Origin: Prasinococcaceae sp. CCMP 1430
Lineage: Eukaryota; Plantae; Prasinodermophyta
Direction: 5' to 3'
NCBI GenBank assembly: GCA_013416795.1
Contig: RQSC01000002.1
Span: 348,603-412,602, forward strand
DNA length: 64,000 bases
In this document: positions 5,356 to 29,191 of the stretch, piece after piece
Position numbering within the stretch: the first letter of the stretch is position 1
Layout: the number at the start of each line of letters is the position of its first letter
The notes under the pieces: generated by a model
Seen by the model: the letters and a program-made list of their open reading frames with translations, nothing else
The model's database searches: none
Told to the model about the DNA's origin: nothing
Program-made: the position numbers and the translations under genes

Positions 5356-5801
5356 CCTCGCCGCGGACGGCGGCGGCCGCGCGGTGCGGCAGGTGCTCGC
5401 GCTGCCGGCCGGCCGCGCGCACGCGGCGGCGCGCGGGGGCGAAGCCGCAACCAGGTCTACCCTCCAACTCCGGCGAAATAGACCTGGTATCGTCGAAACG
5501 AACAGGTGTGTTGCATCAATCCGCTGGGTGAATCCAGATCCATACCCCGTAGAGCGCGATGACGCTTACAATGAAAGAATATATATGTGTCTACATTTCC
5601 AAAAATACGGAGTGCACTAAGAAATTAATTCCGAAGTTTGCGCGCGGCTGGGCGGCGGCCGCCGGCGGCTGGAGGCCGCTGGGCTGCGGCGGCGCGCCAC
5701 AGCGCGCGCCAGGGGAAGGGAAAGGGTCCGCGCCGCGCTCCTGTCGCGAGCCGCCGAGCCGCCGAGGGGCCTCGCCGCGCCCGCTGCGCCTCGCCCGGCG
5801 C

Positions 5802-6077
5802 ATGGTCGACGTCATCCAGGGCGTGCTCGTCGAGTGCGACCCGCCGCTCAAGCAGTACCTGCTGGCGCTCGACGACAGGGAGACCGTCAAGTTCGTCGTC
5901 GACAAGCTGCCCTCGGACGACCGCGCGCTCTTCGTCAACCCCAGCGCCAAGGGGTTCGTCGACGAGAAGATCGCCGAGCTGTACGACAAGTACTCGGCAG
6001 ATCCCCGCGACGACCGCGAGGACAAGAGGAGGGCCGCCGCGGGGGGCGGTGCGGGGGGCAAGCGCAAGGCGCGGTAG
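5802..6077 (+). CDS. TFB5: TFIIH subunit Tfb5/TTDA
   Basis: MVDVIQGVLVECDPPLKQYLLALDD...FVVDKL...LFV matches the Tfb5 pattern; ATG at 5802. Confidence 0.85.
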   Translation: MVDVIQGVLVECDPPLKQYLLALDDRETVKFVVDKLPSDDRALFVNPSAKGFVDEKIAELYDKYSADPRDDREDKRRAAAGGGAGGKRKAR

Positions 6078-6161
6078 AGCGCGAGAGCAGCAGCAACAGC
6101 AGCGTCCACGCCGACGCCGACAGCCACGACACCAGCAGCAGCGCCCAAACAGTGCCTTGCG

Positions 6162-9818: not shown

Positions 9819-11507
9819 TTAGGAGCGGCGGGTCTTGGCGGGCTGTCCCAGGATGCCCTTGGTGTCGACCTCCTGCGGCGGCGTCGGCCCGCCGGCGGGC
9901 TGCGTGGGGCACAGCGCCTCCGCGGTGACGTCGCGGCAGCGGGCGAAGCGCCTCCACGACGAGCGATTGCCCGCGCCGGCGACGCCGTTGAAGTACGGGT
10001 GTGCGAGCGCGTCACGCGCGCTAATACGTTTGGTGGGGTCGTATGCAAGGAACTTGCCAAGCAAATCAATGCCGTCTTCGTCGAGCTGTGGCACCAGCTG
10101 GCTCAGTGGCTTTCCCTCCCACTGAGGAAAGGTGACCTGGTAGTCCGGCATGTCCTCCACGCCAGCCCACGTGTCCGGGCTGGGGGTTCCGAGAGCACGG
10201 AAGATATGGAAGAGCTGGTCGATCTCGATGTTCTCGCTGGGGAAGAGCGGCGCGCCTTTGGCCAGCTCGCCGAATACCGCGCCGACGCTCCACATGTCGA
10301 TCGGCATCGAGTACTTCACCTTTGGTCCGCCAAGCAGAATTTCGGGCGCCCGGTACCACAGCGTCACTACCTCGTGGGTGAGGTTGCCCACGGGTGGAGC
10401 CACCTGGCGGCTGAGACCCCATCCAGCGATCACGAGCCGACCCGTACGCCGCTCCACGAGCAGATTGTCCGGTTTGATGTCGCGGTGCAGGGTCGCCCGC
10501 GAGTGCGCAGCCTCGACACCCAGAAGCAGTTGCCACATGAGCATGCGCACCGTCTCTGCGTACAGCGGGACGTCCTCGTCCAGTGACGGGGGCGTCTGGT
10601 CCTCATCCAATTCTTCCGCGGCTTGGAAGAATTCTGGGGAATTCTTCCAAGCGTGGAGGGCCAAGTACTTACTTTCTCTCATAAACGTACTCATCCTCAC
10701 CGCTGGGCCCTCCACCGCTGGGCCCTCCGCGAGGGGGCCTATCTCGCGCTGCCTGAGTGCCCGCACCGAGGGGCTGGGGGGCGCGCTGCCCCCCGCCCCG
10801 GGATGGCTCGGCGCACACTCTTCGACGACGGTGACCGCGCTCCTGTACTCGGGCACCATCATGCCCTCCTCTTTCATGTCGCGCCAGACCTTGACGACCT
10901 CCATGTTGCTCGTGCCGCTCCGGTCGTGCTTCTTCGAGGCCGTCTCGCTCTGCGCCTTGAGGAGGGCCTCGGGCGCCCGGATGATCCACTCGCGCGGCGG
11001 CTGCCGCAGGTTGGTGTCCATGCGCTCAAAGACAATCCGCACTCGCGGCCCCATGTCCACCGCCGCGTGCAGCTTCACCACGCTCGGGCAGCCCTGCAGG
11101 TGTCGCAGCGCGCCCAGCTCGCGGACAGTGCCAATGGATAGCCCCTCCGCCTCACCCGACTCGGCGCACTTGATCGCAACGAGGCGGCCCGTGAGGCGGT
11201 CGCGTCCACGGTACACCGAGGTGCCAGGCGGGTCGGCGAAGAGGCGCTGGAAACGGTCCCCGGGCTTGCTGAGGCGCGAGATCGTGTACGCGCGGAAGGC
11301 ACGAGGCAGCACCACGGGAGGTGGCGCCGAGCCATAGAGACGCTTGTGCATCGCCTCCCACACCGACGGCTCGGCCGCAGCGGCACGCCACGAGCGGCAC
11401 ACGCGCGCAGCCTGCGACAGCCAGTTCGGCCATTCCACGTTCTCGAGCACCTTGGCGAGCACGTTCGCGTCCAGGTCGGGACCGCCAAGTACGCATGCGC
11501 GGCGCAT
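9819..11507 (-). CDS. F-box + CDK-like kinase-fold protein (probable pseudokinase)
   Basis: F-box-like LDANVLAKVLENV...AARVCRSWR...VW at about 11330-11480, then VAIK, SIGTVRE, HRDIKPDN, IAGWGL, THEVVTLWYRAPE and DPTKRISARDALAHPYF. ATG at 11507 is a candidate start only. Confidence 0.8.
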   Translation of the reverse strand: MRRACVLGGPDLDANVLAKVLENVEWPNWLSQAARVCRSWRAAAAEPSVWEAMHKRLYGSAPPPVVLPRAFRAYTISRLSKPGDRFQRLFADPPGTSVYRGRDRLTGRLVAIKCAESGEAEGLSIGTVRELGALRHLQGCPSVVKLHAAVDMGPRVRIVFERMDTNLRQPPREWIIRAPEALLKAQSETASKKHDRSGTSNMEVVKVWRDMKEEGMMVPEYRSAVTVVEECAPSHPGAGGSAPPSPSVRALRQREIGPLAEGPAVEGPAVRMSTFMRESKYLALHAWKNSPEFFQAAEELDEDQTPPSLDEDVPLYAETVRMLMWQLLLGVEAAHSRATLHRDIKPDNLLVERRTGRLVIAGWGLSRQVAPPVGNLTHEVVTLWYRAPEILLGGPKVKYSMPIDMWSVGAVFGELAKGAPLFPSENIEIDQLFHIFRALGTPSPDTWAGVEDMPDYQVTFPQWEGKPLSQLVPQLDEDGIDLLGKFLAYDPTKRISARDALAHPYFNGVAGAGNRSSWRRFARCRDVTAEALCPTQPAGGPTPPQEVDTKGILGQPAKTRRS

Positions 11508-11559
11508 CGCGTGGCACACGGGAGACACGCCGGGCACAACCTGACCCGCGCCGCCCCAG

Positions 11560-11905
11560 CGAAGAGGCGTCGGTGTCGGAGGCGTGCCGCCGCTGAGAAG
11601 CCCGCCTGCTGCGGATGCCGACGAGGCCGCCGGACCGCCGCCGCCGCTGCCGCTGCTGCCGCCGCCGCCGCCGCCGGGCGGGGCGAGCGAGGGCGCCGGC
11701 GCAGCCACGTCCTCGCCATCGCCAGCAACGGTCGCCCACAGCGCCAGCGCCGCCATGACCGCGAAAGGCAGCAGCACGTACGCGGTCATGGCCACCGAGC
11801 CGTCGCCGACAGCTCGCACGCCGCGCAGATTGAGCGCAGCGGCGACCGCGAGAACGCCGACCTTGGCGGCCCAGGCCGGCCAACCGCTGAGCCGGTCGCA
11901 GCCGT
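11560..11905 (-). pseudogene. Internal fragment of a PUT/LAT-type polyamine (APC) transporter
   Basis: LNLRGVRAVG...YVLLPFAVM resembles plant PUT/LAT LNYRGLTIVG...LPFAVM. Only about 2 TM helices are present, bounded upstream by a single N at 11906 and running in frame into the F-box ORF. Confidence 0.6.
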
Positions 11906-12714
11906 NGCCGGCAAACCGTTCGCGCCAGGCGCGCGCGCGCGCGGCGGCCGTTTCGAACCGCGCCGCGCGCCCCCGCGTGCGTTTTGACAAAGGAGCTCCC
12001 GTGGGTATTTCAATACAACATTTCATATTGGTATGTGACGCATCGTGCGCGGCACGCAAACACACCGCACATGTGACCGATGCGGGCCGAAACGCGAAAC
12101 GCGAAAGCGAAAACGTAAAAAAACGAGACCGAAAAAGGCGCGGCGTGGCAGCGCAGGTCGCTTTGAAGGCGGCTGCGCGTTTTGGTTGGGGGCGACGACG
12201 CCCGGAATTCGAGGGGCGCGCGCGCGCTGGCCGGCCGGCGCCGGCCGCGCGGGCCGCAGTTTGGGATCGATTCGACGCAGAAATGCGGCGGAGGGCGGCG
12301 GCGGCGAGGGCGATCCGCGGGTCGGAGCCCAGGCGTTGATCCGTTTCGGCGCACGGGCGCGCGCGCGCGCGCGCGCGCTCGGCCGCGGCGGCCGCGGCGG
12401 CCGGCAGGGAAGGGGGGGAGGGCTGCGTGGGCGGCGGGGGGTCTCGCCCGCGAGAGGGAGGCGGGGAGGGGAGGAGGAGAAAGGGAGGGAGCGGCCGTGT
12501 GTGTGTGTTTGTGTTTGGGGGAAGGGGGCAGGGGCGGTGCACTCGCCCGCGAGCCGCGCACCGGCCGGGGAGAGAGAGAGGGAGAGAGCTCCGCCACCGC
12601 CACGCGGCGCAGCGCACCCGGGTGGGCGAGCTCGAGGCGACAGGGCGCGCGTGAGGAAGGGCGAGGCTGTCGGGAAAGGGATTAATACGCGCCTGTGCCT
12701 CTCGCTCCGTCGCC

Positions 12715-13299
12715 ATGTCGGTGCGGCAACGCGCGGGCGCCCGAGGCGGCTCGGATAACGTCGTTGACATGAAGGCGCTCGGCGACCGCTCAGGCTCCGC
12801 CAACGCAAAGAAGGCGCCGCCGAAGGACGAGTTTGACGAGTTCATGGACTTCTGCGATGAGAACGCCGGCATGCTCGTGGGGCTGATCCTGATTGTGCTC
12901 GGCTTCGTGCTGCTGGTCATCGCGTGGATGATGTGTGCACAGCTGCGCGCCCGAGCGTTTCCCAATGGCCCGCGCGGGCGGATCGGCAAGGGCTACGCCC
13001 ACCGCCAATTCAACATGTTCGCGTCGCTGTGGTGGGTGGGGCTCGGGATGTGCGGGGTGCCTGCCATGGTGCTGCTGTACCAAGCCTACTCGGGCGACGA
13101 CCAGTGGATCGGCAAGATCCGAGGCGTGCTCACGCGCTTCGCGAAGCTGAAGGTTGTGAACCGCGTACGCAAGGCGGCGTACCTAATGCGCTGGCGTGCC
13201 AAGGAGATGGCCGAGGAGCGCCGCGTCGCGCAGTCCCGCACGACCGCTGCGGGCGCAGCGCCCACGTACGCGCCCACACGGGCCAAGAATATGGTCTAG
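12715..13299 (+). CDS. Hypothetical 2-TM membrane protein
   Basis: 194 aa ORF with coding-like composition and two hydrophobic segments (MLVGLILIVLGFVLLVIAWMM; FASLWWVGLGMCGVPAMVLLY). Family not recognised. Confidence 0.7.
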   Translation: MSVRQRAGARGGSDNVVDMKALGDRSGSANAKKAPPKDEFDEFMDFCDENAGMLVGLILIVLGFVLLVIAWMMCAQLRARAFPNGPRGRIGKGYAHRQFNMFASLWWVGLGMCGVPAMVLLYQAYSGDDQWIGKIRGVLTRFAKLKVVNRVRKAAYLMRWRAKEMAEERRVAQSRTTAAGAAPTYAPTRAKNMV

Positions 13300-13467
13300 C
13301 CAGACCCCGCATTTAATCACGCACGCGCGAATGCATGCATACAACGACCAGCCACCGGCGCACACGCACAGAGAGAGAGGAGCGGCGCGGGGCCGTGACA
13401 TCGAATACGATGTGTGCTCACCGCGCGCGATATCTCAGGTGCTCATGCGCACGCGTGCCTTCGCGCC

Positions 13468-14559
13468 TTAGCTGGACATGACCATCGGCGCCTGTGAGGT
13501 CGATTCGTACGTCGTCTGGAAGATGGTCGCTGTGGCGTCCTCCGCCTCCTTACCGGGCTTGGTCCCGAATTTGGCCTTGAGCTGTTTCTTGTATGCCATC
13601 AGCACTGCGTCCGAGCCCTGAGGCCGGCGCGCGCGTGCGCACGGAAGAGAGGCGCGTGCGTGTCGCGTTAGTTGCCACCTGCCCACGGCGTGTGTGGGAG
13701 GGGGGGAGCAGGGAGCGGGAGCAGCGAGCGCGAGAGCATCTTTGCGCTCGCGCATTGCATGCCGCGCGCGCGTGAGTGCTGCCGCACCTTTCCATCCGCC
13801 ACCGAGTACTTGTCCTTGAGCCCCTCGATGGCCTTTGCGCCGTCGTTGTCCTCTTTGAACCATACGAAGCAGAACGCCTTGCCGTCGACCACACCGTCAT
13901 TCGGAAAGTGCACCTTGCTCACCTGTGCACCATGGGCAAGAGGCACGCATCACGTGGGTGTGATGATGCACGTGATTCGATGCGTGCACGCGTGAGCACA
14001 CGCGTGCGTGACTGTGCGCGAGCGAGCGTGCGTGCGCATCTTCTGCTCAACGCTTCGTCTTCCCTCCTGTACCCCCGCATACTCTGCGCACCTATGCGAT
14101 ATGGCGAGCGCCGGCAAGCGTGCAGCGCGCGCACCTCGCCGAATTCCTCGAAGGCGCCTTTGATGCTCTCCGCCTCAATTTCCGGCTCCAGATCCTTGCC
14201 GTGCGCGCGCGTTGGCTTCGTCAGCTTGCTGCGGGGGTATGCTGCAGCGCGCTCGCGCGCGTTCGCAAGGTGCGCGCGACCGTGCATTCAGAGGTACGCT
14301 AGCAAGAGCGAGCGAGCGAGAGAGAGGCCGAGAGAGAAGACACGCGCATGCGCGTGCGTTTGCTCACGCGTGCACGCGGGAGACAGGTACATACACACAC
14401 AGATGCAGATAGCGTGCGCGTCCGTCACGCGCAGAGCTTTGTCCGTTGCCTCCTCTTTCCACACCTCACCTTGACGAGCACCGGGTTGTAGTGCACCGGG
14501 TAGTACGGCCCAGGGTCCTCCCACATCGCATACTTCGTGCGGCCACCCGGCGGCGGCAT
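13468..14559 (-). CDS. RRM-domain RNA-binding protein (about 5 exons)
   Basis: Spliced exons MPPPGG...PVLVK / ...IEAESIKGAFEEFGE / VSKVHFP...KAFCFVWF (RNP1-like) / GSDAV...MSS*, with GTGAG/GTGCG donors. Confidence 0.7.
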
Positions 14560-14684
14560 GACGGCGGCGAGCTGGGGAGGGAGGAAGGCGGAGCAGCTGG
14601 GGCAGCGCCGTCGCGTGTTGTGCCGCCCCGCGCCCGCGCGCCCGCCGCCGCTGCCGCCGCCCCCCACTGCAGCGCCCGGACNGC

Positions 14685-16928
14685 GTGCATCCAAGCATGC
14701 AGCTGACGTCGTCCAGCACGGCGTCGGAGTCGTTCTGGGAGTTGAAGAGCTTGACATCCTGTTGGGCGGGCTCACGGCGCCGGGCGGGCACGCGGGCGGT
14801 CAGCGGCTGCGCGCCGCAGGCGCCGAGCTTCGCGTCGGCGGCGCTCGCACCCGCGGGTCTGTGCCCCGGGTGCGGCGTCCCGCTGCAGGACCACGACCCG
14901 CAGGCGCCGGGATTCTACGTTAAGCCGCGCCGTAGCTCGCCAGGAGCGGAGTCGGAGGAGCCAGCCGGCGCGGCGGCGAGGCTCGGAGCGGCCGCTGCTG
15001 CCGCCGGTGTGAGCGCCGACGAGCTGGACGCGCTCGTCGCAGACACACAGGCTGAGCTGGACGCGGCGGCGGAGGCGGAGGCGGGGGCGGAGGGTGAGGC
15101 AGACCTCTTTGCCCGCGCTCCAGCGGGCGGGGACTACGTCACGTACGACTCAGACGGGCGTGTGCTCAACGACCCGACCTCCGAAGCGCTCTTCGAGGCG
15201 CTGCGCAACAATGACCTGGAGGAGGCCTATGCTCTCGCCGAGTCGCGCGCGGCTGAGGAGCGCGGTGAGGAGGGAGACAACAGCGCCGCCTTTCAGGACG
15301 CGCTCGCGGCATACATCGCCGCGAACCCGGAGGCCGTGCGCGATTTTGAGAGGGGCGGCACGGCGGGCGAAAGCGACCTCGTGGGCGATGTCGACCTCGA
15401 CGGCCTCGACCTCGATGCTGACGACCGCGAGTTCGGCGACTTTGACGACGACTACGAGGACGACGGCGACTTCGATGCTGGTCTCGAGGGGGCTAACATA
15501 GGCCCCGCCGCCGATGCGGCCGCCGCCGAAACCACTGCGGAGGCGTCACCGGCACTGAAGCGCGAGCGGCCAATCGTGTGCGCCCGCTGCTACTCGCTAA
15601 CGCACCGCAACAGGCTGCAGGACGGCGGCGTCGACGAGGCGCTCATGCCGGGCTTCGACTTCACGCGCGTGCTCGGCAGCAAGTTCAGGAAGGCGTACGA
15701 GTACCGACGGCTCGTAGTGCTGCTGGTGGTCGACGTGCAGGACTTCGATGGCAGCTTCCCGCGCGAGGCGGCCGACCTGCTCGCGGCCGTGGCGGCCGAG
15801 CGCGACGCAGACATGCGCTACGCCGCCGGCAAGGAAAACATCAGCGGCAGCGGCAGCAAGGCGGCGCGCCGCGCGCCGCCGCTCACTGTGTGCGTTGCCG
15901 CCAACAAGGCGGACCTCATGCCCACGTGCGCAACGCACAACCGCCTGCGCAACTGGGTGCGCGAGCGGGCGGTCGCGTATGGCTGCCCGAGGCCCGATGC
16001 GGTGCACATGGTGAGCGCCAAGACGGGTGTGGGCGTCAAGGATTTGATGAAGGACCTCGACCACAAGATCGGCAGCCGCGGCGACGTGTGGATCTTAGGA
16101 GCGCAGAACGCTGGCAAGTCGAGCCTTATCAACTCGCTGCGTCGCCATCGCGCGCTGCTCGAGGGGCCCGACTCGGACGCCGCGAAGGCGGCGGAGGTCA
16201 CCGAGGCCCACGTGCCAGGGACTACCATCGGTGTGCTGCGCCTGCCCGGCGTGCTTGCAAGTGGTGGCCGCCTCTTCGACACCCCCGGCCTGGAGCATGT
16301 GCATCAGCTTACGAGCAGGCTAGGACCAGAGGCGGTGAAGGCCCTCATGCCTGGCGGGCGGCTGCGGCCGCGCACGTGGCGCATGGCCGCGGGGCAGAGT
16401 CTCGCGCTAGGCGGCGTGGCGCGCATCGAGGTGGTGAACTCGCGCTCGAGCGGTGGAGGCGCGCTCTACCTCACCGCCTGGCTCAGTGGCGAGGTCCCGT
16501 GCCACATGGGGAAGACCGAGCGCGTGCTCGAGATCTTCGAGCGCGACCAGGGCAGCTCTCTCTGGCCGCCTCTCTCCCCCGAGGCCGCATCCGAGCTCGG
16601 CGCGCTTGTCCCCACCGAAGTCGAGGTCTCAAGCGACGACTGGATGGCTGCTCAGACCGACGTGTGCGTCGCAGGCCTCGGGTGGGTGGGCGTGGGCGTT
16701 AAGGGCACCACGCGCCTGCGCGTGTGGGTGCCTGAGGGCACGGCAGTCACCACCCGCCCCGCAATGATACCCGACATGGCCGACAAGTGGGAGCGGCCGG
16801 GGCGCTCAGTTGCCATCAAGAAGGCAGGCAAGGGCGCGCGCGGCGGTGGCAAGAAGGGCGGTGGCAAGAAACACGATCGCAAGAAGAAGAGCAGAAGTAA
16901 GGGCGCGCACGACGACGACGACTGGTGA
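14685..16928 (+). CDS. BPG2: YqeH/NOA1-family circularly permuted GTPase, BPG2-like (plastid ribosome biogenesis)
   Basis: Zn ligands CPGCG and CARC; G4 NKAD, G5 VSAK, G1 GAQNAGKS, G2 PGTT, G3 DTPG in permuted order; C-terminal DVCVAGLGW. Confidence 0.88.
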
Positions 16929-17079
16929 GCCGCGCGTGACGGCGCGTCGTAAGCATAATCAGTTGGGCACGTCCGCCCGGGGCGCCCGCGCCCGCGCTGC
17001 CAAAGACGCCTTTGAGAAAGCGTTCCTTAGTCGACGTGTATTAGGTGCATGCTCAGCCGCGATCGCGCTGGTGAGGTGT

Positions 17080-18642
17080 TTAGTAGAGGGTGCGAGGCTC
17101 GAGCAAGTTGCGTGGCGAGATGCCGCCGCTCGATATCCTCCCGCCGCTCTTGCGGCGATGCTTCATCTCCATCGCGCGCTGCTCCGCCCGGACGTTGCGC
17201 AGCTCGTGCGAGTACGCCGGGTCGTGCATCTGCACATAGGCCTGCGGCGTGCAGAGCTGCGGGTAGGTGGCGAAAAAGTCCTTGTAGCCGCCCTTGAGCA
17301 GGAAGAGGTGCGGGAAGGACAGCGCGGGGTACTCGATGGCGTGCACGTTGCGGTCAGTGTTGCGCAGGTGGCGGCACAGCCTGGGCGCGCGCGCGGAGCT
17401 GAACTCGCAGTGGAAGATGATCGCCGGCCTGCTGGCTGCCTCGGGTGACTCGGGCGCACACGCGGGCGGCCGCTGGTGGATGAAGTACTCCTCTATGTCC
17501 TCCGGGCGCCAGAGGTTGACGGAGTTGCGGACGTGCCCGCCGTTGTGCTCGTATGGAAAGCGGCAGTCCACCACCAGGAAAGTTGAGATGCCCCAGGCGG
17601 TGGGCTCGTGCAGCAGCCGCGCGAGCGTGTGGCAGTCGATCGAGTGCAGGTCGTCGTGGGGCACCGTCGGCAGAATGGGGCGCAGCGCCCCCGTCAGCGG
17701 GCAGAAGGATGGGCTGACAAGGCCGATCTTCGCCTGCTCCTCCGCCGCGGTCGCCATCGCCGCGCGCCCCGGCGTCGCGTCGGCCGATGGCGCGCAACGC
17801 GAAAACGCCACCGCCGCATCCTCGCCGTCCGCGAACGGGCAGCCGCCGAACGCCGACATCACGTTGCTGGGCGACGTCGCGACGGCGCCCTCCCCACCAA
17901 GTGCGTGCGGCGCGGGCAGGCGCGGCGGCGGCGAACACATGCTGTCGCACGCGCGCCGCTTCGCCGAGCGCCGCTGCCGGCCCGGCGATCGCTCCGAGGC
18001 CGAGCGCCCGCGCGTCCTTCTGCTCATGCCCCCGCCGTCGCCGACTGGCACGAGCGGCGGCATGGACGCCGTCCGTGGCGCCGCCAGGGGCGTCGACGCG
18101 CCGAGAGGTGGGATGGGCGGCATCGCGGGCCACGCGGTGGGCCTGCGCTGCGCTGACGCAAGCGAAAACGGCGAGCCTGCCATGAAGTTCGCGAGCGCCG
18201 TCACCGGGGAGACGAGGCCCGCCCCACCGAGCGGCGGCGCGACGGGCGCGCCCGCTGGCGCGCCGAAAGCCGCCGAGTGCGATGGGGGCGAGAGGAACCC
18301 CGCCTGGCCCGGGATCTGCTCCTGCGCGCTCACCGGAGGCGCAGCCTGCTGCATCCGCGCCTGCGCCTGCGCTCCACCGGCACCGAATGTGTACGCGAAT
18401 TGGCGCGCGGCCGCCCGCTCCGCACCGCCCATCGGCGTCGCCGCGCCTGCGGCGAGGGGCGTGCGCAGGCCGTCGTCGCAATCCATTCCACCGCCACTCG
18501 CGAGCGGGTCGCGCTCATCGAGCACCGAAACTGGCGTGACGTGCCGATGGTGCGCATGCGCTTGCTGCGGCTTGCCCGCGAGCGCGCCGCCCTCCGCCGT
18601 CGAGTGCCTCTGCGCGCCGTAGTCCGCGTCGGCGGTCTCCAT
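17080..18642 (-). CDS. CDC25: M-phase inducer phosphatase Cdc25 (canonical, with long N-terminal regulatory region)
   Basis: VVDCRFPYEHNGGHV, catalytic HCEFSSAR (HCx5R), RNTDR, LLKGGYKDFF and YVQMHDP; ATG at 18642. Confidence 0.95.
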   Translation of the reverse strand: METADADYGAQRHSTAEGGALAGKPQQAHAHHRHVTPVSVLDERDPLASGGGMDCDDGLRTPLAAGAATPMGGAERAAARQFAYTFGAGGAQAQARMQQAAPPVSAQEQIPGQAGFLSPPSHSAAFGAPAGAPVAPPLGGAGLVSPVTALANFMAGSPFSLASAQRRPTAWPAMPPIPPLGASTPLAAPRTASMPPLVPVGDGGGMSRRTRGRSASERSPGRQRRSAKRRACDSMCSPPPRLPAPHALGGEGAVATSPSNVMSAFGGCPFADGEDAAVAFSRCAPSADATPGRAAMATAAEEQAKIGLVSPSFCPLTGALRPILPTVPHDDLHSIDCHTLARLLHEPTAWGISTFLVVDCRFPYEHNGGHVRNSVNLWRPEDIEEYFIHQRPPACAPESPEAASRPAIIFHCEFSSARAPRLCRHLRNTDRNVHAIEYPALSFPHLFLLKGGYKDFFATYPQLCTPQAYVQMHDPAYSHELRNVRAEQRAMEMKHRRKSGGRISSGGISPRNLLEPRTLY

Positions 18643-18893
18643 GTGCGCGGCGGCGACCGCACAGGGGCGGAGCGACGCAGCGCGGGGCGGGGCGCGGCGC
18701 GACGGGACGGGGCTGGAGTGGTCACCGCGATGCACCGAGCCTCCGCCGCAGTCGCCGGCGGATCGGCGCCACGACCGCCCCGCAGCCCGCGGCGCGGGAC
18801 CGGGCGCCGGCGCTTGCCCCAGAGGCGCGGAAGAGGGGCACAGCGAGCCGCGGAGGTTGGGGGGCAGGCGCGCGGGGCGGGCTGCCCGCGGTG

Positions 18894-18928
<35 letters not shown>

Positions 18929-19732
18929 TTAGCTTATCGACACGCACAGCGGCGCGAGTTTTTCGCGCGCGCGCGCCCGGCAGGGCGGGGCGGTTCGAAA
19001 GCGAACAGTCCTGCAAAGGGCGCCATCGCCATCAAATTCAATCGGGCCTGACTGATGAAAAACACGTATGTGCACGTACACTACGTAAGTTAAGGTTGTA
19101 TGTTTAGGGTATTAAAATCAGGGTGTAGAACTCCACGCGAGCGCGAGCGCGATTGCACAACGCTTTTTGCCTTTGTTTCGCGGGGCTTTGTTGCGGGCTC
19201 GCGGGGGCCGGCGCGGCCGGGTGCGTTTCGATGGGGCCGCGACGTTTCGGTTGCGTCGTTCGCGCGGCGCGGATTCGGCGATTCGGATCCGGATCCGCGG
19301 CCCAGTCCGTCCGGCCGCGGATCCCGCGCGCGCGCGCGCGCGCCCCGCTGGCGCGCACGGGTCGANNNNNNNNNNNNNNNNNNNNNNNNNNNNNNNNNNN
19401 NNNNNNNNNNNNNNNNNNNNNNNNNNNNNNNNNNNNNNNNNNNNNNNNNNNNNNNNNNNNNNNNNNNNNNNNNNNNNNNNNNNNNNNNNNNNNNNNNNNN
19501 NNNNNNNNNNNNNNNNNNNNNNNNNNNNNNNNNNNNNNCGCTCGCGAGCGCACGCGCACGCGCGGCGGGAGCGGGAGCGGGAGCGGCGGCAGGAACGGCC
19601 GTGGCGGCGGCAGCAGTGGCGCTGCAGGCGGGGCTGCGCAGCGCACGCAGGGTGTGGCGCACACGGATAGCGCACGCAGCTTCGTAGCCGGTGCCCTCGC
19701 GCAGGGATTAGGCCGTGAGGTGGCGAGCGGCG
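18643..19732. promoter_or_regulatory. Divergent CDC25/WEE1 intergenic region with E2F-like sites
   Basis: TTTCGCGC at 18961-18968 and TTTCGCGG at 19176-19183 fit the WTTSSCSS consensus. Also a C31 run at 18898-18928, TTTAGGG at 19103 and an N gap at 19366-19538. Confidence 0.5.
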
Positions 19733-21430
19733 ATGTTCGGCTACCCGAGCGGCGGCGGCGGCGGCGGGGCGATGGCGCCGCCGCCTGCGCCTGGAGGCAG
19801 GCGCCTCGCCGAGCACTTCAGCCAAGTGCAGCTGCGTGACGGCAAGGGGCAGGGCGAGAATGGAGGCTTCATGTACGATTTGCCCGATGACGCGGAGGAC
19901 ATGGCCGCCGACGGAAGTGGCGACGGGATGCAATGTGGCTCAGACGGCGGTGCGCAAGGGGGCGGGGGCGGCGGGCTCTTTGGCACGGGCGGCGGGAATA
20001 CCTTCATGCCACCGATTGAGTCCCAAGGGTGCGGTGGCGCAGGCGCGGGTGACTACGCGACACCCGCCGACGCTGCCGGCGCCTACGGCATGTACAGCAC
20101 CCAGGACAACCAGTACTGCACCCAGGAGGGCGACAAAGAGAACTACTGCACGCAGGAGGGTGCGGGCATCCAGGCCCAGACGCCGGGGTCGATGCCCCCC
20201 GTCGGCAAGATGCTCAAGCGCAGGCGCCCTGCGTGGCACAACAACAGCGGCGTGGGGGGCAGTCAGGTCTCGCATGGCTACGGCTCGCAGTTCAACGGCT
20301 CGTACATGAGCAACCCCTGGGACTCGTGCACCGAGCAGAGCACGCAGGAGACGGGCAACACGCGCATGGAGGCGCCGGGGGGGCTCTTCGGCACGCAGGG
20401 GGAGGCGACTTCGGGACCCGCCGCGGGCTCGCAGGGCATGCCGTACGTCATCGCCGCCCCGCGCGTCGGCCTCTCACGGTCGCGCAAGCCGGGCGTCAAA
20501 AACGCGCTCTCGTCGCCGGGCATCGCGCGCAACCCCTTCTTGGCCGATGAGGACGCCGGCAAGAGCAACAGCAGCCGCCCGCTGCCGCGCCTCAAGCCGA
20601 TGCCCAGCCGCTACCGCTCGGACTTCCGCGAAGAGGGCGAGCTGGGCAAGGGCGCCTACAGCAAGGTGTTCAAGTGCCGGCGGCGACTGGACGGCTGCCT
20701 GTACGCAGTCAAGTGCAGCCGGCAGCCGCTGCACAACGACGGCGACCGGCGACACGCCGTCGGCGAGGTGCAGGCGCTGGCGGCGATGGGATCGCATCCC
20801 AACCTGGTGCAGTACTTTGGGGCGTTCGAGGAGAACGCGCACCTGTACATTCAGCTCGAGCTATGCGCTGGCGGCGCCCTGGACTCGGCGCGCGAGGCCG
20901 GCACGCGGCTGACGGAGCGCACGCTGATCGCCATCGTCGCCAACATAAGCGCTGCGCTCGCGCACATGCACAGCAAGGGGGTCGCCCACATGGACGTCAA
21001 GCCCGACAACATCTACTGCACGGGCGACCTGCACGCACCTGAGGAGTGCTCGTTCAAGCTCGGCGACCTTGGCAGCGCCACGCACCTCGACGGCACGCAC
21101 GGCTTCAAAGAGGGTGACTGCCGATACATGCCCGCCGAGATCCTCAACGACGATTTCAGCGCGCTCGACAAGGCCGACGTCTGGAGCCTGGGCGCCACGG
21201 TGTATGAGCTCGCGCGACCACCGCCCGATGGCGAGTCGACTGTGGCACCGCTACCGCGCGAAGGCCCGCAGTTCGCCGCGATCCGCGCGGGCAAGCTCAC
21301 GCTGCTGCCTGGGCTCACGAGCTCCTTTCAGGCGCTGCTCAAGCGCATGATGGAGCGCGACTCGGCCAAGCGCCCGACCGCCGCAGAGGCAGCCAGCACG
21401 GCGATGAAGCTGCTGGCGCAGGCTGACTGA
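19733..21430 (+). CDS. WEE1: Wee1 protein kinase
   Basis: SRYRSDF, RRRLDGCLYAVK, HMDVKPDNI, KLGDLG, EGDCRYMPAEILN and DKADVWSLG, all Wee1-family signatures; ATG at 19733. Confidence 0.95.
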   Translation: MFGYPSGGGGGGAMAPPPAPGGRRLAEHFSQVQLRDGKGQGENGGFMYDLPDDAEDMAADGSGDGMQCGSDGGAQGGGGGGLFGTGGGNTFMPPIESQGCGGAGAGDYATPADAAGAYGMYSTQDNQYCTQEGDKENYCTQEGAGIQAQTPGSMPPVGKMLKRRRPAWHNNSGVGGSQVSHGYGSQFNGSYMSNPWDSCTEQSTQETGNTRMEAPGGLFGTQGEATSGPAAGSQGMPYVIAAPRVGLSRSRKPGVKNALSSPGIARNPFLADEDAGKSNSSRPLPRLKPMPSRYRSDFREEGELGKGAYSKVFKCRRRLDGCLYAVKCSRQPLHNDGDRRHAVGEVQALAAMGSHPNLVQYFGAFEENAHLYIQLELCAGGALDSAREAGTRLTERTLIAIVANISAALAHMHSKGVAHMDVKPDNIYCTGDLHAPEECSFKLGDLGSATHLDGTHGFKEGDCRYMPAEILNDDFSALDKADVWSLGATVYELARPPPDGESTVAPLPREGPQFAAIRAGKLTLLPGLTSSFQALLKRMMERDSAKRPTAAEAASTAMKLLAQAD

Positions 21431-21813
21431 GACACGAGCGCGCCGCCAGCGCGTTTGATCGTGCACGGCGGATGACAGGATGGCTAATGACTCCCGCCCT
21501 CTGAGCCGCAACTGTGAGCGCCTGAGGATGTAGAGAGAGACTATTATCGACCGCGGACGCGCTCGCGCTGCCCACGAGCCGCGGAGCGCGTGCGCGTGGC
21601 GAGGGCGCGCGCTCGCACGTGGATGTGTGCAACAACCGGCTCTGGCCCTTTACAGCGCGGCACAGGTGCCCTGATTGCTCCCCTAGTATCTCTAACGGGT
21701 CGCCGCGTCCCGGCTCCCGCGATTAGCCACCGCATACAGTACAGCACGCGCGGCGGACCCACGCGCGCGCGTGCGCGCGTGCCCGTCCCGCCGCGAACGC
21801 AAGCACGAGGGCC

Positions 21814-22500
21814 TCACGTGCTGCCCACTGCGAGGGCCCGAGCAGGGAGGATGCACGAGGAGGCGAGCGGTGGGGCGACACGCACGTCAGCACATACATC
21901 AGTCGCGGCCAGCAGCAGGGCGCTGCGCAGCGTGCGAGCGAGGAGGGGCACCGCGGATGGCGCGCAGGCCCTCCCATGCCCATCCTCCACTGGGCAAGCG
22001 CGTTGCGACGGGCGCTTTGCGCGGACCGCAACCCACGCACCGATGATGTTGTTGATGGGGATGAAGATGAGCTTGACGAAGAAGCCCACGAAGCCCATCA
22101 CCACAAAGCCCAGCGCCGTGCGGCTCGCCACCTTGGTGTACTCTGCCGAGCGCGTGCGCGTGGCGAGCGCGTGAGCGAGGCGGGGGTGGGGAGGGGAAGG
22201 GGCATGTTAGAACGATGGCAGGCACAGCTCACGAGAGGGGTTCGCGCGCGTCCGCCCGCGCGCCCGCGCAGGGCGGCACATCGCGCGTGTCGCAGCAAGG
22301 CCACGGCGCCACGCAGCAGCGCCGCCGATCGGCGGTGCGGTGCGCGCGCGAACAGCCCCTCCACCCCTGCGCCCTCGCGCGCCCCGCGCGTCCCGCGCGC
22401 GCGCACCCTTGCGGTCGGGCTTGGTGCACTTGTGCAGCAGGCGGATGGACTCCTTGGTGAAGTCCACCAGGGGCTCGCGCACGCCGTTGATCACGTCCAT
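21814..22500 (-). CDS. SEC61G: Sec61 gamma subunit (3 exons: 22500-22407, 22142-22041, 21827-21814)
   Basis: Spliced product [69 protein letters not shown] with canonical GT-AG junctions. Confidence 0.95.
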
Positions 22501-23899
22501 GGCGGCGGCGGCGGCGGCGGCTCCCCGGGGGCGTCGTGCGCACGCCGCGCGCGCTGTGTCGCCGTCGCCCCGCCACCGCGCGCGCGTGCATGCTGGGTTC
22601 CATTTTTTTTTTTGCGTTTTCCCCGTGTAATTTGGGAGGCCAGACAGAAAGCCACGCCGGCCCATACCGACTGGCCGGAGATTGCATCAGGCAAATTAAA
22701 CTTGGGAAAAATATTACGCTCGCGGAATCCGGGGGGCGCTGGGCGGAACCCCGGCCGCGATCGGCGGCCTCGCGCGGCGTGCGTGCGATTGGACCCGCGC
22801 GGTTCGGCAGCGCGGGGTCGCGCGTTTGGGGTGAATCCGGCCGTGCTGGGCGCAGGGTTTGGATCCCGCCCGGATCGCGCGGCTCCGGACGGGCAGGGGG
22901 TTCCCGCCCTCCTCAACCACTGGGGCACGTCCGTCTTGCCCTGGTGGGGCAAGGACGACGGCCTCGAGCCGTGCCACCATGAGCCGCTGCTCGAGTTCCA
23001 TGCTCGCAAGGTACCGCACCTCTCGAGGCCGTCGCGCCGGCTCTTCGAGTTCATGAGGTAGTTTGACAGAATGAGGCTGCTGACGCCGTTGTCCTTCGGC
23101 GGCGACGATCCATGCCGCCGCGCGGTGGTGGCAACCGATGCGCTGATCGCGCACATGCTATCTATCAACCCGCGGCTGGGCGAGGTGGTTGCGCTACGAC
23201 GACGCCATTGCATGCATGCGCATCGGTTGCAACACGCCCACTTTGTGGCGACGCGGGCCATCCTCGCTGACACGTCCCTCGGCGAGACCTTCGCCATGGA
23301 ACATGAAGGTGCTGAGCAACCCCCTTCGTCCGTGCTATTGGATTTGCATGGACGTTGCAGGTGCATGGTCGCTCAGTGCGTGCATCGCCATATTACGTTG
23401 TGCAGTAGGCCCCGGCCCGTACAACTCTTATTACGCGCACGCGCGTGCGCGTGCGCGCCTGCGCCATTGCGTTCGCATTCGCATGGGCGAGCGCGTGCGC
23501 ATGCGCGTGCGCGGGTATGCGGTGAAGGCGATCCACAAGCTGCCTAAAGACCGTGCGAATAGCCGGGGAACACGAAACGGCGACCACGAGGAGCCTTCCG
23601 CTCCCGCGCGGCGCACACCACAAAACGCATACAAAAGAACATCATTCGTTTATTCCACAGCTTGCCGCACGAAGTTGGAATACGTGTTACAGTACAGTCG
23701 CCGCAGTTAGAATCGATGTGCCGAGTAGCTCTCCCGTGGTTAAACGTTTTGGGAGCGGAGTGAAGCAGTGGCGCGCGCGCGGCGCTGCCGGGCTGGTGCG
23801 TCACACCGCGCGCAGCGACCCCCCACCCTCGCCTCCCTCCGCCCTCCTTTCGGCGCTCGTAGCGAGACCGAAGCCCCGGATCCCTTATCCTGCCGCGCG

Positions 23900-24552
23900 A
23901 TGGGGCTTCCAGGCGGCCACAGCGAGGTGAAGCCGGCGGACGACGCCGCGCGCCGCGCGCTCGAGGCCGTGCGCGCCGCGCTCGAGGCGGCCCGCGGGGC
24001 GGGGCCGTTCGAGAGGCTCGACGCCGTCGAGTACACGTCGCAGGTCGTCGCCGGGACGGTGCGCGGTCCGGACCCCTCCCCCCCCCCTCGCGCGATGTAG
24101 TGGATCCGCGCCTCGCCGCGCCTGCCGCGACGGCTTTGCACAGTCGAGGACGTGCAGGTGCTGACGGCGCGTACACCCATTGATTGGGCTCGCACGAATG
24201 CATGGGACCGCTCCATGAACTTCATACATCCGCTTACTCACGCGCGCAGGTGCTGCGCGTGCGCGCACAGACTGGGACAAACGAGTACCTCGTCGCCGGT
24301 ATCTTCGGTGCGTCGCGCGCTCGCGTGCCGTGCTGCTGCTCGCTCTGCCGCGTACCCGTGAGTGCTTCACGTGCGCCCCGGTACCCTCAGCATATGTACT
24401 GTATTGAGCGGCGTGACCTCCGATGCTGACACCGGCTGAGGGCATCGTCCCTGCGCTCAGTGCCGCTGCCCCACGAGAACGCCCTCCCGAGCCTGCATGC
24501 CAACTCGGGCCCGCCGCGCTTCGGTCTGACCGAGGAAGAGAGCAAGCTGTGA
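23900..24552 (+). CDS. Type-1 cystatin (stefin/cystatin B-like), 3 exons (23900-24058, 24250-24307, 24461-24552)
   Basis: N-terminal PGG, QVVAG reactive motif and LPHEN loop after in-frame splicing. Confidence 0.85.
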
Positions 24553-24680
24553 GCAGCGGCAGCGGCGCGCGCTCGCCCCGACTCACCCCACCCCACCCCA
24601 ACACAAGCTCTTGGGCGGCGACGAGAGGCTGGCCCGAGCGGATCGCGACGCTCGCAATTTTGTCTGTAGATACATGGTAG

Positions 24681-26959
24681 TCATACATCACCCCCTATTG
24701 CGGTGGCGGGGCTCTCAGCGGCGCGCGGCGCGGGCGGAGCTGTGGGCGCGGCTCCGGCTGTCGACGCCGTGGTGTTTTCTCTGAGTGCCGCCTCGACGGC
24801 GCTCTCCGCTTGCGCGGCGTCCATTGCGCCGATGATCGCCGCGTCCCCCTCCGAAAACTCGTCGCGGACGAGCGCCGCCAGCTGCGCGTGCGCCTCGAGC
24901 ACATTGGAGCGGATTGGCCCGATCAGCGCGGCACGCGTGGACTCGTCGGGTACGTACGCGCGCATGGCGGCCACCATGGGCTTGACCTCCGCCAGCAGCG
25001 CCTGCCGTGCCTTGGCCACCACCGCCTTGGCCTTCTCCGGCGAGGCGAAGGCATGCTCCGCGAGCGGCTTGCGCGGCTGAGTCGACACACGCACGGCGGT
25101 GACCTTGGTGATGAAACTCAGCACCGGCTCCACGGCGGCCTTGGTGGCGGCCATGATGAACTGCTCGCAGGCGGCCTTGAGGCGCTTCTCCACGTCGTCC
25201 TTGGCGTCCACCACCACATCGCGCACCTTGGGCGTGGAGCGCGTGAGCAGCGCCCCCAGCGCGTTGGCCGAGGTGAAGGCCGCCAGGCTAGCCTGCCCGC
25301 TGAGCATGCGCCGCAGATCCGACTGCACGTTGGAAAAATCGAGCTGCGCGTCGTGGCTGGTGAAGTCGACGTCGAAGGGTGCGATGCGCTCACGCAGGTA
25401 GAGCAGCGATCGCACGAGCAGCAGCCGGCCGTCGTTAGCGCCGGCGGACCTGGCCACCGCCGCGGTCGCAGCCTGCGCCGAGCGCACGGCCGCGGCGACC
25501 ACCTCCTGTGCGAGCTGCTGGAAGACGTGCGTCTCCAGCGCACCGTAGAGCGTGCCGAGCAGCCGCACGGCCCTCTCGAGCGGCACGATCGCGGCGGGCA
25601 CGTTCGCGCCGGAGAGCACCTTTGGGAAGTCCAGCTCGGCGGCGGAGAAGCCGTAGCCGTCGATCTCCGAGCGCACGAACGCGGCTGTGCGGAACGCGAG
25701 TCGCTCCTGCGCGTCGGCCGCGGCGCGAGTTGCCACGCGGTGAACGCTGGTGAGCTTCGCGGGGTCGAGCTTGGCACCCGCTTGGCCGTCCTGCGCGCCG
25801 CCGTCCGCGGCGGCCGCAACGCGCAGGGCGTCCACGAGTTCGCAGAGCGCGTCGAGCTCGACAGTGTGCACGAGCATGGGTCGAAGGAGGTCGTACAGCA
25901 CGCCGCAGAGCGGATCGAGCAGCGAAGATATGCCGGGCCCGACCGCCATCGCCTCGTCGCCCGCGCCGGCCCCCTCTCCGCCGTCGCCCGCGTCCCGCTG
26001 TCGCGCCGCTCCGGTCCCGCCCGGGAAGAAGTGCTCGAAGAGCGCGCGCTCGAGCTGGCACACCTGCGCCAGGTACGCACAGCCCGCGCGCGCGAGGTGG
26101 GCGGGGCCGCCCTCGGTGGCTAGCGACCGCACGCGGCGGTGCACGGTATCCGCTACGAGCTCCAGGCGACGCGCGCAGTATGTCGCGTGGCAGTCGGCGA
26201 GCAGCGCGCCGTACTCTCCGCCAGGCGTGGCGCCTGCCAAGTCGGCGGTGCCGCCGTTCGCCTCCTGCGCGAGCGCGGCCTGCGCGCGCCGCGCAAGCTC
26301 CGACGTGAGCGGGGCGAGCGCCGGGGCCGCCGCACGGAAGCGCACGTACAGCCCAGCCATCTCGCCCTTGCCCTCGGAGGCGGCGCCCGGCGCCTCGGCG
26401 CCCGAGCCGTCCGCCGCGCCCTTCTCAGCCTGCGCCGCGGGCGCCGGCGCCGCCTCCATCGCCGCGGAGGCGGCCTTCCGCAGCGACGACGTCACGTAGG
26501 TCTTGACGAGGCCCAGCGCGCGGCTTTGCAGCTGCTTGAACTTGACGGTGTACACGCCCGCGTCCTTGTAGTGCGCGTGCTGGCGGACGTACTCCATCGC
26601 CTCGTCGAGGCTCTTGAGGATCGGCAGGAAGGGCTCGGGCGAGCCGCTGGCGTTCGCCTCGGCGCTCGCCTTTGCGAACGCCGAGGACACCTCGTCGAGC
26701 GAGTCGAACATGCGCAGCTTGGCGTGCACGGCGTCGGCGAACGCCTCGAGGCGCGCCTTCTCGCCCGCGAGGCGCTCGCACTCGCCCGCGAGGGAGGACG
26801 CGTGGCTCGACGCGGCGGCGTGCGACTCGGACAGGGACGAGAAGCCACTGAGAAGCGCGTTGGTCTGCAGCGCGCGAGTGCAGAAGGAGGGACGGGCGCG
26901 GATCGGCAGGCACGCGTCCGCGTCAGCCCGCGAGCGCGCGTCGGGTGACGAGCGCGCTC

Positions 26960-26991
<32 letters not shown>

Positions 26992-27219
26992 CGTGCCGCG
27001 TACCTGATCCTTGAGCTCCTCGATGGTCGATGCGTAGCTCGCGAGATCGCGCGCGTACGACCGATACTTTTCCTCGGATCGCGCCTTCACCTCGGCCTCG
27101 AGCTCGGCGTGCGCCTTGTAGAACTGGTGGCTGTTGAGCAGTGGCACGTCTGCGCTGCCCTCCTGCTCGCCCGCGTCGCCGCCGCCCGCGGCGCCGCTCG
27201 CCGCGGCGTCGGCGGCGTC
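24681..27219 (-). CDS. COG3: Conserved oligomeric Golgi complex subunit 3 (5' end in gap; intron 26865-27003)
   Basis: FLPILKSLDEAMEYV..H.HYKDA.VY.VKF.QLQSRALGL, DAQERLAFR, LLYLRERIAPFDVDF and KRLKAACEQFI. Confidence 0.9.
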
Positions 27220-27921
27220 NNNNNNNNNNNNNNNNNNNNNNNNNNNNNNNNNNNNNNNNNNNNNNNNNNNNNNNNNNNNNNNNNNNNNNNNNNNNNNNNN
27301 NNNNNNNNNNNNNNNNNNNNNNNNNNNNNNNNNNNNNNNNNNNNNNNNNNNNNNNNNNNNNNNNNNNNNNNNNNNNNNNNNNNNNNNNNNNNNNNNNNNN
27401 NNNNNNNNNNNNNNNNNNNNNNNNNNNNNNNNNNNNNNNNNNNNNNNNNNNNNNNNNNNNNNNNNNNNNNNNNNNNNNNNNNNNNNNNNNNNNNNNNNNN
27501 NNNNNNNNNNNNNNNNNNNNNNNNNNNNNNNNNNNNNNNNNNNNNNNNNNNNNNNNNNNNNNNNNNNNNNNNNNNNNNNNNNNNNNNNNNNNNNNNNNNN
27601 NNNNNNNNNNNNNNNNNNNNNNNNNNNNNNNNNNNNNNNNNNNNNNNNNNNNNNNNNNNNNNNNNNNNNNNNNNNNNNNNNNNNNNNNNNNNNNNNNNNN
27701 NNNNNNNNNNNNNNNNNNNNNNNNNNNNNNNNNNNNNNNNNNNNNNNNNNNNNNNNNNNNNNNNNNNNNNNNNNNNNNNNNNNNNNNNNNNNNNNNNNNN
27801 NNNNNNNNNNNNNNNNNNNNNNNNNNNNNNNNNNNNNNNNNNNNNNNNNNNNNNNNNNNNNNNNNNNNNNNNNNNNNNNNNNNNNNNNNNNNNNNNNNNN
27901 NNNNNNNNNNNNNNNNNNNNN
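27220..27921. other. Assembly gap (others: 3500-3542, 19366-19538, 51281-52029)
   Basis: N runs. Confidence 0.99.
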
Positions 27922-29018
27922 CGCCCGCGCCCGCGCCCGCGGCTGCGCCCGCGGCTGCGCCGGCCGATGGCGGCAACGGCGTGGCGGCGCCCGTCGCCGA
28001 CGACAACGCGCCCCGGGCGCGCAAGCCGTACACGATCACCAAGCAGCGCGAGTGCTGGACAGAGGCGGAGCACGCGCGCTTCGTGGCAGCGCTGAAGGCG
28101 CACGGCCGAGCGTGGAAGCGCATTGAGGCGGCCGTGCGCACCAAGACGGTCATTCAGATTCGGTCGCACGCGCAGAAGTACTTCCTGAAGGTCCAGAAGA
28201 ACGGCACGGGCGAGCACGTTCCCCCGCCGCGCGCCAAGCGCAAGGCGAGCCGCCCGTACCCTCACAATCCGCCGCCCCCGAGCAAGCCGCCCGCGGCAGC
28301 GCGCGACGCCGCCCGAAAGGGCGCTCGCAGCAGCAGCAAGCCGGCGGCGAGCAGTGGCGGCGACTGCGACGACAAGAGGAACAGGAAGCGCGCGCGAGCG
28401 AACAACGACAGCAGCATCACGGGCTCGACCATCGGCTCGTCCGGAGCGGTCGGGGGTGCGCTTGGCGCGACCGGGGGGCTTGGGGTGCCACTCGCCATGC
28501 ACGCGGGCGTGGGTGTGCCTGCCACTGGCTACCCCCAAGGCCTGCAACAGACGAAGGCATTCATGTTCGGGCAGGCACCGCAGGAGCAGGCTTTCGGGGG
28601 GCTGCCTCAGCAGGGAGGCGGCAGCAGCGGACTGATAGCGCAGCAGCAGGGGAAGGGGGCGCACCGACACCCGCACCAGCAGCACCAGCAGTACCACGAG
28701 CAGTGGGCTGCGCCGTCACACGGCACACACGCCCGTGCCCGCCCGCTCGCACCGGTCGTGTTGCTCGACCCCCGGCCCTGTGAAGTCCGCGCGGCGCCGG
28801 ACTTCGAGCACGTTTACACATTCGTGAGCACGCTCTTCGAAGACGAGTGCCCTCCACTCGGCCAGCCCGCCGCGCAGCCGCCCGCACCCGCCGGAGGCGC
28901 GTTGGAGTCGCTGCGCGCGCTCGGCACGGTGGAGCGTGAGACGGCGCTCGTGCTGCTTCAGAACATGACTTCCAACATGGAGAGTGGCGTTGACTGGGCG
29001 CGTTCGATGCTGCTGTGA
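27922..29018 (+). CDS. RVE8: REVEILLE/LCL-type single-MYB clock transcription factor (5' end in gap)
   Basis: [46 protein letters not shown], and C-terminal LCL domain [10 protein letters not shown]...[10 protein letters not shown]. Confidence 0.88.
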
Positions 29019-29191
29019 GCGGCGCGCCTCGCCGCGTGCAGCAGCCCAGAGGATAGTACAGTACCATGCATATTTTTTTAGGAGAGGAAGGCGAGGGAGA
29101 CGCTTCGGCGGAGTGGTGCGCGCACGTGTGCCAGGCAACCTCGTTTATGGGAACAATTTTGTACACAAAATCCCACGACGCACGAATGTGC

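Follow-up and report, generated by a model that had tools for sequence, protein, structure and literature searches.

This analysis concerns CDC25 and WEE1, two cell-cycle genes that lie head to head in the genome of the green alga Prasinococcaceae sp. CCMP 1430 (assembly GCA_013416795.1). Both are found in a 64,000-nucleotide stretch of contig RQSC01000002.1 (positions 348,603 to 412,602 of the forward strand), which we call the window and to which all coordinates refer unless another contig is named. CDC25 occupies the minus strand and WEE1 the plus strand, and the two are separated by a non-coding spacer containing an assembly gap. An initial annotation of this DNA had suggested that the arrangement could be an operon-like mitotic-switch module, served by one bidirectional promoter. 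The physical pairing holds: it is real rather than an artefact, and it is kept in a sister lineage. The operon-like promoter, on the other hand, finds no backing in the sequence. Our literature search found no report of CDC25-WEE1 linkage or of a promoter shared by the two. The arrangement is probably that of an ordinary divergent neighbor pair, inherited by descent within one small clade.

Two intact cell-cycle genes on opposite strands

The two genes and their diagnostic parts are listed below (ORF, open reading frame).

17080..18642, minus strand: CDC25 gene, single exon; stop codon at 17080-17082, likely start ATG at 18640-18642
17155..17673, minus strand: Cdc25 catalytic (rhodanese-fold) domain and C-terminal helix; residues 355-527 of the 551-residue ORF, from the alignment to CDC25C/CDC25B
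17389..17412, minus strand: active-site loop HCEFSSAR (HCX5R), read from the sequence; human CDC25s have HCEFSSER there
19733..21430, plus strand: WEE1 gene, single exon in the window; likely start ATG at 19733 (MFGYPS...), stop codon at 21428-21430
20627..21397, plus strand: Wee1-type kinase domain; Pfam Pkinase E 7.6e-47, aligned to human WEE1

In phmmer searches of the PDB, the minus-strand ORF at 17080-18735 matches the catalytic domains of CDC25C (E 8.6e-40), CDC25B (E 1.4e-37), and CDC25A (E 6.8e-34), to which its rhodanese-fold domain is closest, and it scores 33 bits against the Pfam Rhodanese model (cut-off 22.2). Upstream of its HCEFSSxR loop it carries the family motif DCR[FY]P[YF]E in the form DCRFPYE, and it agrees with an alignment of 18 Cdc25 sequences at all invariant columns (from D62, C63, R64, P66, and E68 through to H114, C115, E116, and R121). 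Judged by these features, ORF 17080-18642 is a canonical Cdc25 phosphatase, as the initial annotation had recognized from its HCEFSSAR loop on the minus strand. By homology, it would remove the inhibitory Tyr15 phosphate of a cyclin-dependent kinase (CDK).

That a deep-branching green alga should have a canonical CDC25 is to be expected, since Ostreococcus and many streptophytes have one as well. A functional canonical CDC25 is attributed to Ostreococcus tauri (Khadaroo et al. 2004, as cited in PMC4392632 and PMC13237563), and the canonical clade is present in many streptophytes, including Marchantia, and was lost in vascular plants (PMC13237563, 2026). The assertion that land plants lack canonical Cdc25, made in the initial annotation, is therefore too broad, as bryophytes and other streptophytes retain the canonical-type clade and only vascular plants have lost it (PMC13237563). 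Ostreococcus CDC25 (O. tauri; L048/L049 from Ostreococcus sp. 'lucimarinus') has the same canonical metazoan/yeast-type catalytic domain and sits in a likewise intron-poor, compact green algal genome. It differs in being only ~38% identical in the catalytic domain and in reading YCEFSSER where the window has HCEFSSAR. The window thus represents a second, independent green algal clade, outside Mamiellales, with a fully canonical Cdc25 alongside Wee1. A canonical Cdc25 in this clade is consistent with the recent view of canonical CDC25 as ancestral in green plants and later lost (PMC13237563).

The plus-strand ORF at 19715-21430 likewise scores best against WEE1 among PDB proteins (165 bits, E 2.6e-47), followed by WEE2 (152 bits), MYT1 (124 bits), and S6K (84 bits) as the next family. 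The human WEE1/WEE2 kinase domain (PDB 5V5Y, 1X8B, 5VDK) is the best match over the whole kinase domain and shares HxDxKPxN, DLG, and EGDxRY with it. Aligned with human WEE1, the window kinase has YAVK with the catalytic lysine, HMDVKPDN, KLGDLGS (in which DLG replaces DFG), and KEGDCRYMPAE, corresponding to the HxDxKPxN, DLG, and EGDxR[YF] signatures of the Wee1/Myt1 family, and it is nearer to Wee1 than to other kinase families. ORF 19733-21430 is, on this showing, a Wee1-family kinase, and the higher score for WEE1 than for MYT1 bears out the name given to it in the initial annotation. Phosphorylation of CDK Tyr15 would be its role by homology. Its N-terminal half, in contrast, is unrelated to that of human WEE1, being low-complexity with an SQ/TQ cluster. 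The closest named WEE1 matches are in Coccomyxa and Chlorokybus (Viridiplantae) and those of the neighboring COG3 gene in Chlorokybus and Amborella, with only 37-41% identity for both WEE1 and COG3.

Both genes appear to start upstream of where existing gene models place them. The EukProt-derived database models P0152 (CDC25, 468 amino acids) and P0157 (WEE1, 519 amino acids) are single-exon and identical to the window ORFs, with later starts at 18486 and 19871, respectively. A sister lineage offers a comparison; it is represented by seven contigs (L001, L002, and L092-L096; 70% GC) from Tara Oceans and other marine assemblies, made from different samples and with different assemblers. In CDC25, the motif HRHVTPxSVL is kept in this lineage and lies upstream of the P0152 start. 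Because conservation reaches this far, the ATG at 18642 (METADADYG) is favored. In WEE1, the N-terminus MFGYP(S/G)GGGG...MAPPPA is kept, and the sister-lineage gene has an intron of ~150 nt after the MFGYPG...MAPPPA exon (L001 about 2610-2740, minus strand), which is lacking from the window gene (19790-19810). Since this N-terminus is conserved across a sister-only intron, the ATG at 19733 is favored. Intron and N-terminus together imply that P0152 and P0157, as well as the prokaryote-style calls in the sister lineage, start too late. The better start codons for both genes are, together with the canonical Cdc25 of a second green algal clade and the corrected gap size given below, the main additions of the present analysis.

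The sister lineage preserves the N-terminal regulatory regions of both proteins, and each region contains a feature of its own. In the otherwise fast-evolving, Ala/Pro/Gly-rich N-terminus of Cdc25, the segment RGRSASERSP (residues 242-251; 17983-18012, minus strand) is kept in both lineages and forms an RxxS motif of the kind that serves Chk1 or 14-3-3 control in animal Cdc25. The SQ/TQ cluster in the N-terminal half of WEE1 (19733-20600, plus strand) comprises at least 8 S/T-Q motifs in ~130 residues (YCTQEG, STQET, FGTQGEATSGP, and others) and is largely kept in the sister lineage. Its composition suggests direct checkpoint phosphorylation of the ATM/ATR type.

The spacer between the genes

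Between the two start codons lie the following features.

18643..19732: intergenic spacer of the divergent pair; assembled length 1,090 bp, against about 1,391 bp in contig L003, which has no gap
18961..19183, plus strand: TTTCGCGC (18961) and TTTCGCGG (19176), a pair of octamers resembling the E2F consensus
19035..19135: AT-richer island, 42-50% GC versus 69% for the genome; ~400-500 bp upstream of the CDC25 ATG
19366..19538: assembly gap of 173 N; 483 bp in L003 (6731-7213), from blastn colinearity on both sides

The initial annotation placed the two starts 1,090 bp apart, including a 173-N gap, which is exact for the assembly, with both ATGs backed by conservation in the sister lineage. The gap can be sized with L003, an independent ENA contig of 17.5 kb that is ~96% identical to the window and comes either from another strain or from an assembly of low coverage. 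L003 is colinear with 12835-29262, carrying the YqeH-like GTPase gene, CDC25, WEE1, and COG3 with order and orientation unchanged, and its blastn alignment reaches 19365 and resumes at 19539. Because L003 bridges the gap colinearly, the scaffold join, the order, and the orientation are correct, and the gap is under-sized by ~310 bp, which puts the true spacer at about 1.39 kb. As the gap lies in intergenic DNA, the reading frame across it is no concern. Between the starts of the coding sequences, L003 has 1,391 bp and L001 has 1,193 bp, compared with 1,090 bp in the assembly of the window; the transcription start sites would be nearer each other.

The record of L003 (ENA ERZ28548065, 'chicken_3__NODE_2647', coverage 0.68) is that of a marine-alga-like contig in a 'chicken'-labelled assembly, where it likely arrived as feed, water, or reagent carry-over. 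Single-base indels that frameshift CDC25 in L003 are explained by the low coverage. A poly-C run of 31 bases at 18898-18928, ~260 bp upstream of the CDC25 ATG, is only C5 in L003; the homopolymer may vary between strains, or the assembly may be wrong here.

That no recognisable gene intervenes, as had been claimed, is confirmed with the ungapped spacer. It holds no coding-like ORF: spacer ORFs have a flat ~0.75 GC at all codon positions, versus a GC3 of 0.88-0.89 and a GC2 of 0.53-0.60 in CDC25 and WEE1 (the region as a whole is at ~69% GC). The Rfam search of the spacer matched no family, and tblastx of the spacer against that of the sister lineage gave no translated similarity. Two prokaryote-style gene calls on L003 that might have pointed to a hidden gene turned out otherwise: the first (5414-6430) is the N-terminus of CDC25 with a frameshift, and the second (6436-7335) is a non-coding ORF whose GC content is flat across codon positions.

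Shared cis-elements conserved between the species were sought with blastn, k-mers, and tblastx and did not come to light. Between the two lineages' spacers, blastn at word size 7 returned only GC-rich low-complexity matches without an alignable block. The numbers of shared 8-, 9-, and 10-mers (283, 138, and 73) show no excess over dinucleotide shuffles (316 +/- 21, 167 +/- 18, and 79 +/- 14, respectively). In the motif scan, the MSA core AACGG occurs at chance-like numbers. The AT-richer island at 19035-19135 is a candidate core promoter or nucleosome-free region, and along the ungapped spacer the GC content dips a second time, more weakly, ~400 bp from the WEE1 ATG. The two dips are ~550 bp apart, a layout no less compatible with two core promoters than with one.

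As for the E2F-like octamers, 18 matches in the 64 kb window translate to an expectation of about 0.26 for the sequenced part of the spacer. On inspection, L003 keeps TTTCGCGC but not TTTCGCGG, and the sister-lineage spacer contains none. We regard these octamers as a weak lead rather than as evidence.

Linkage in related and distant lineages

All seven sister-lineage contigs carry the same divergent CDC25/WEE1 pair, with an ungapped spacer of 1,193 bp, so that the arrangement is not confined to the window, contrary to one of the outcomes that the initial annotation had allowed for (absence in all relatives); the more distant lineages tested do lack it. Protein identity to the window is 61% for CDC25 (77% in the catalytic domain) and 67% for WEE1 (79% in the catalytic domain). 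Across CDC25, WEE1, and COG3 the values range from 61 to 74%, which is comparable to congeneric picoalgal species. As the two lineages are closely related, plain inherited gene order suffices to explain why they share the pair.

On the WEE1 side, one further feature is shared:

21814-22146 (about 22035-22146), minus strand: small exon with a transmembrane segment, convergent with WEE1 and kept in the sister lineage

We take this exon to resemble a Sec61-gamma/SecE tail anchor, although Pfam gave no match on the ORF. Its conservation places the pair in a block of residual synteny, in which it is not uniquely preserved. On the other side, synteny breaks exactly at the CDC25 3' end (17080 in the window; L092 5594-15593 in the sister lineage). 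Beyond this point, the window continues with the YqeH-like GTPase gene (14685-16928), tail to tail with CDC25 at a distance of 151 bp. The sister lineage has a gene for an LRR/IQ protein of 1,846 amino acids and then CS-domain, N6-adenine-methyltransferase-like, and SRP-receptor-beta/Arf-type genes; of the 10 kb that lie past CDC25 in L092, nothing was located anywhere in the window. Three adjacencies can be compared between the two lineages, of which two are conserved, and retention of the pair hence matches the background expectation for synteny between close lineages.

To look further afield, metagenomes were scanned with the Cdc25 alignment, which yielded 80 loci; 32 of the fetched loci had at least 5 kb of flank around CDC25. 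Eight of these belong to the clade of the window (L003 and the sister lineage), and all eight have WEE1. The other 24 come from more distant lineages (CDC25 at most 42% identical), and a WEE1-like kinase was found in the flanks (up to 10 kb) of none. Among them, the L048-L053 group is Ostreococcus sp. 'lucimarinus' (exact protein match), in which no Wee1-like kinase is present in the full 10 kb flanks on either side of CDC25. In the reverse direction, CDC25 was near none of four loci with WEE1 homologues (L004, L006, L098, and the P0058 contig), and the gene tables of P0024 and P0058 list no partner gene nearby. A third lineage of ~68% GC (L091) has a WEE1 that is 49% identical; its contig includes just 347 bp of upstream sequence and is hence uninformative on pairing. 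With 24 CDC25 and four WEE1 loci of more distant lineages lacking it, linkage is thus retained only in the sister lineage, and among the lineages sampled it is confined to one small clade. We know of no linkage between human WEE1 and any CDC25 gene.

Other lineages show other arrangements. In L098 (541-4421), WEE1 is head to head with an MCM helicase gene, and in L007 (7778-10970) and L009 (5394-8692), CDC25 is head to head with a gene for a WD40 protein that matches CDC20/Fizzy-type propeller models among many others. Such cell-cycle genes sharing divergent spacers may reflect a general tendency, or chance. L006, a JGI contig of 609 kb and 70% GC, encodes at 10001-11965 a second type of Wee1-family kinase (654 amino acids, 31% identical, PDB WEE1 E 2e-27), which is common in marine assemblies. 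If L006 belonged to the clade of the window, that clade would carry two Wee1-family genes.

Probable inheritance of gene order, possible shared control, and neighboring genes

On the favored reading, CDC25 and WEE1 are two intact, unremarkable cell-cycle genes, transcribed divergently and separated by ~1.4 kb of non-coding DNA. The arrangement would have arisen in, or survived only in, one small marine green algal clade of ~70% GC, and the two sampled lineages would have received it by descent. Most likely, the spacer contains a separate core promoter for each gene. Correlated expression, if any, would stem from the proliferation-dependent regulation of both genes in a compact genome rather than from a selected operon-like device for stoichiometry. 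Separate promoters and the neutrality of the linkage are what we infer; as it stands, the pairing is so far a curiosity of gene order, lineage-restricted and explainable by ordinary inheritance.

Several points weigh against plain inheritance. The chance of these two genes adjoining is ~2/N, or roughly 0.03% for ~7,000 genes, the count in Prasinoderma (PMC7455551), which is only an assumed match (Prasinoderma coloniale has a GC content of 69.8%, close to the ~69% seen here; PMC7455551). By our own reasoning on the look-elsewhere effect, however, k recognizable partners per gene would give ~k adjacent 'meaningful' pairs per genome by chance. The pair also stayed linked although gene order breaks directly at the CDC25 3' end, which, as a single event, is mildly suggestive. 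Moreover, two E2F-like octamers within 215 bp, where ~0.26 are expected, could mark a shared cell-cycle control region, and sites as short as those of transcription factors could escape the conservation tests applied here.

The alternative to which these points lead is a true shared bidirectional region, bound for instance by E2F or MYB3R, in which joint S/G2-M activation fixes the ratio of the two antagonists and selection keeps them linked. The divergent orientation, a spacer of at most 1.4 kb without an intervening gene, and the clustering of the E2F-like sites are what such a region would predict, as is retention of the pair in two lineages across a breakpoint that abuts CDC25. A common input is plausible, too, as in Marchantia polymorpha the G2/M-specific MpCDC25;1 rises together with MpWEE on cell-cycle re-entry (PMC13237563). 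Marchantia resembles the window in having a canonical-clade CDC25 and a single WEE, both of whose transcripts rise with proliferation, but the two are described as separate genes and no linkage is reported (PMC13237563). Co-expression alone would be no evidence for a shared promoter.

Against such a region stand the lack of conserved sequence and of any k-mer excess between the two lineages' spacers, the absence of the E2F-like sites from the sister lineage, and the presence of two separate AT-richer dips rather than one. Furthermore, the switch works without pairing in Ostreococcus and in all other lineages tested, and in other eukaryotes the Wee1/Cdc25 balance is described as mainly post-translational (Perry and Kornbluth 2007, as cited in PMC4392632). 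Classical co-regulated head-to-head pairs of functionally connected genes, namely histone H2A-H2B, yeast GAL1-GAL10, and human PRR11-SKA2 (the last in PMC5372550), also have a short shared spacer. Theirs is mostly <1 kb, its shared elements have been demonstrated by experiment, and the gene products work jointly. CDC25 and WEE1, in contrast, encode antagonists, have 1.2-1.4 kb between their coding sequences, and show no detectable shared element. One bidirectional promoter for both genes is therefore unsupported by the spacer's sequence, and we consider a shared region unlikely, if worth keeping in mind.

In its strong form, the proposal holds that one shared, cell-cycle-regulated control region and a selected linkage set the dosage ratio, and with it the G2/M threshold or the division size, at the level of transcription. 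This is quite improbable. If true, the genome would hard-wire the balance of Wee1 and Cdc25 in a way not known from any other eukaryote. Were the linkage functional, it would offer a natural example of transcriptional ratio control over the antagonism of Wee1 and Cdc25, which governs mitotic entry and cell size, and the alga, tiny and compact in genome, would allow a direct test.

We hold it to be very unlikely that one or both genes are paralogues not acting on CDK Tyr15, in which case the label of a mitotic switch pair would be wrong. The active-site loop with SAR instead of the usual SER, the second Wee1-family type on a contig of 70% GC (L006), and the fact that no CDK with Tyr15 was seen in the window (the nearby CDK-like gene is without it) could be read in this way. 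Yet all invariant Cdc25 residues are present, as are the Wee1 hallmarks DLG and EGDxRY. The PDB WEE1 match is far stronger for the window kinase (E 3e-47) than for the L006 protein (E 2e-27), and in both proteins the N-terminal regulatory region is kept in the sister lineage. Finally, a scaffold mis-join at the 173-N gap between the two genes, against which the initial annotation had cautioned, is ruled out for practical purposes by L003, which spans the gap colinearly with 483 bp in place of the 173 N, and by the identical arrangement in seven ungapped sister-lineage contigs.

Among the other genes of the window, the CDK-like one lies 5.6 kb from the CDC25 stop codon, with two genes in between. 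Within its ORF (9819-12989, minus strand), the stretch 9819-11507 encodes an F-box-like domain and, after it, a kinase with a C-lobe that matches CDK1/CDK2 very strongly (E 6e-68). The GxGxxG/Tyr15 loop is missing, SIGTVRE replaces PSTAIRE, and GWG replaces DFG, and the protein is a probable CDK-derived pseudokinase. Nothing indicates that this gene is syntenic: L003 begins only at window position 12835, and in the sister lineage other genes occupy the flank on the CDC25 side. In view of its nearness to CDC25 and WEE1, it might serve as an SCF adaptor for CDK-binding proteins. The window also contains a plastid-type Ccs1/ResB gene.

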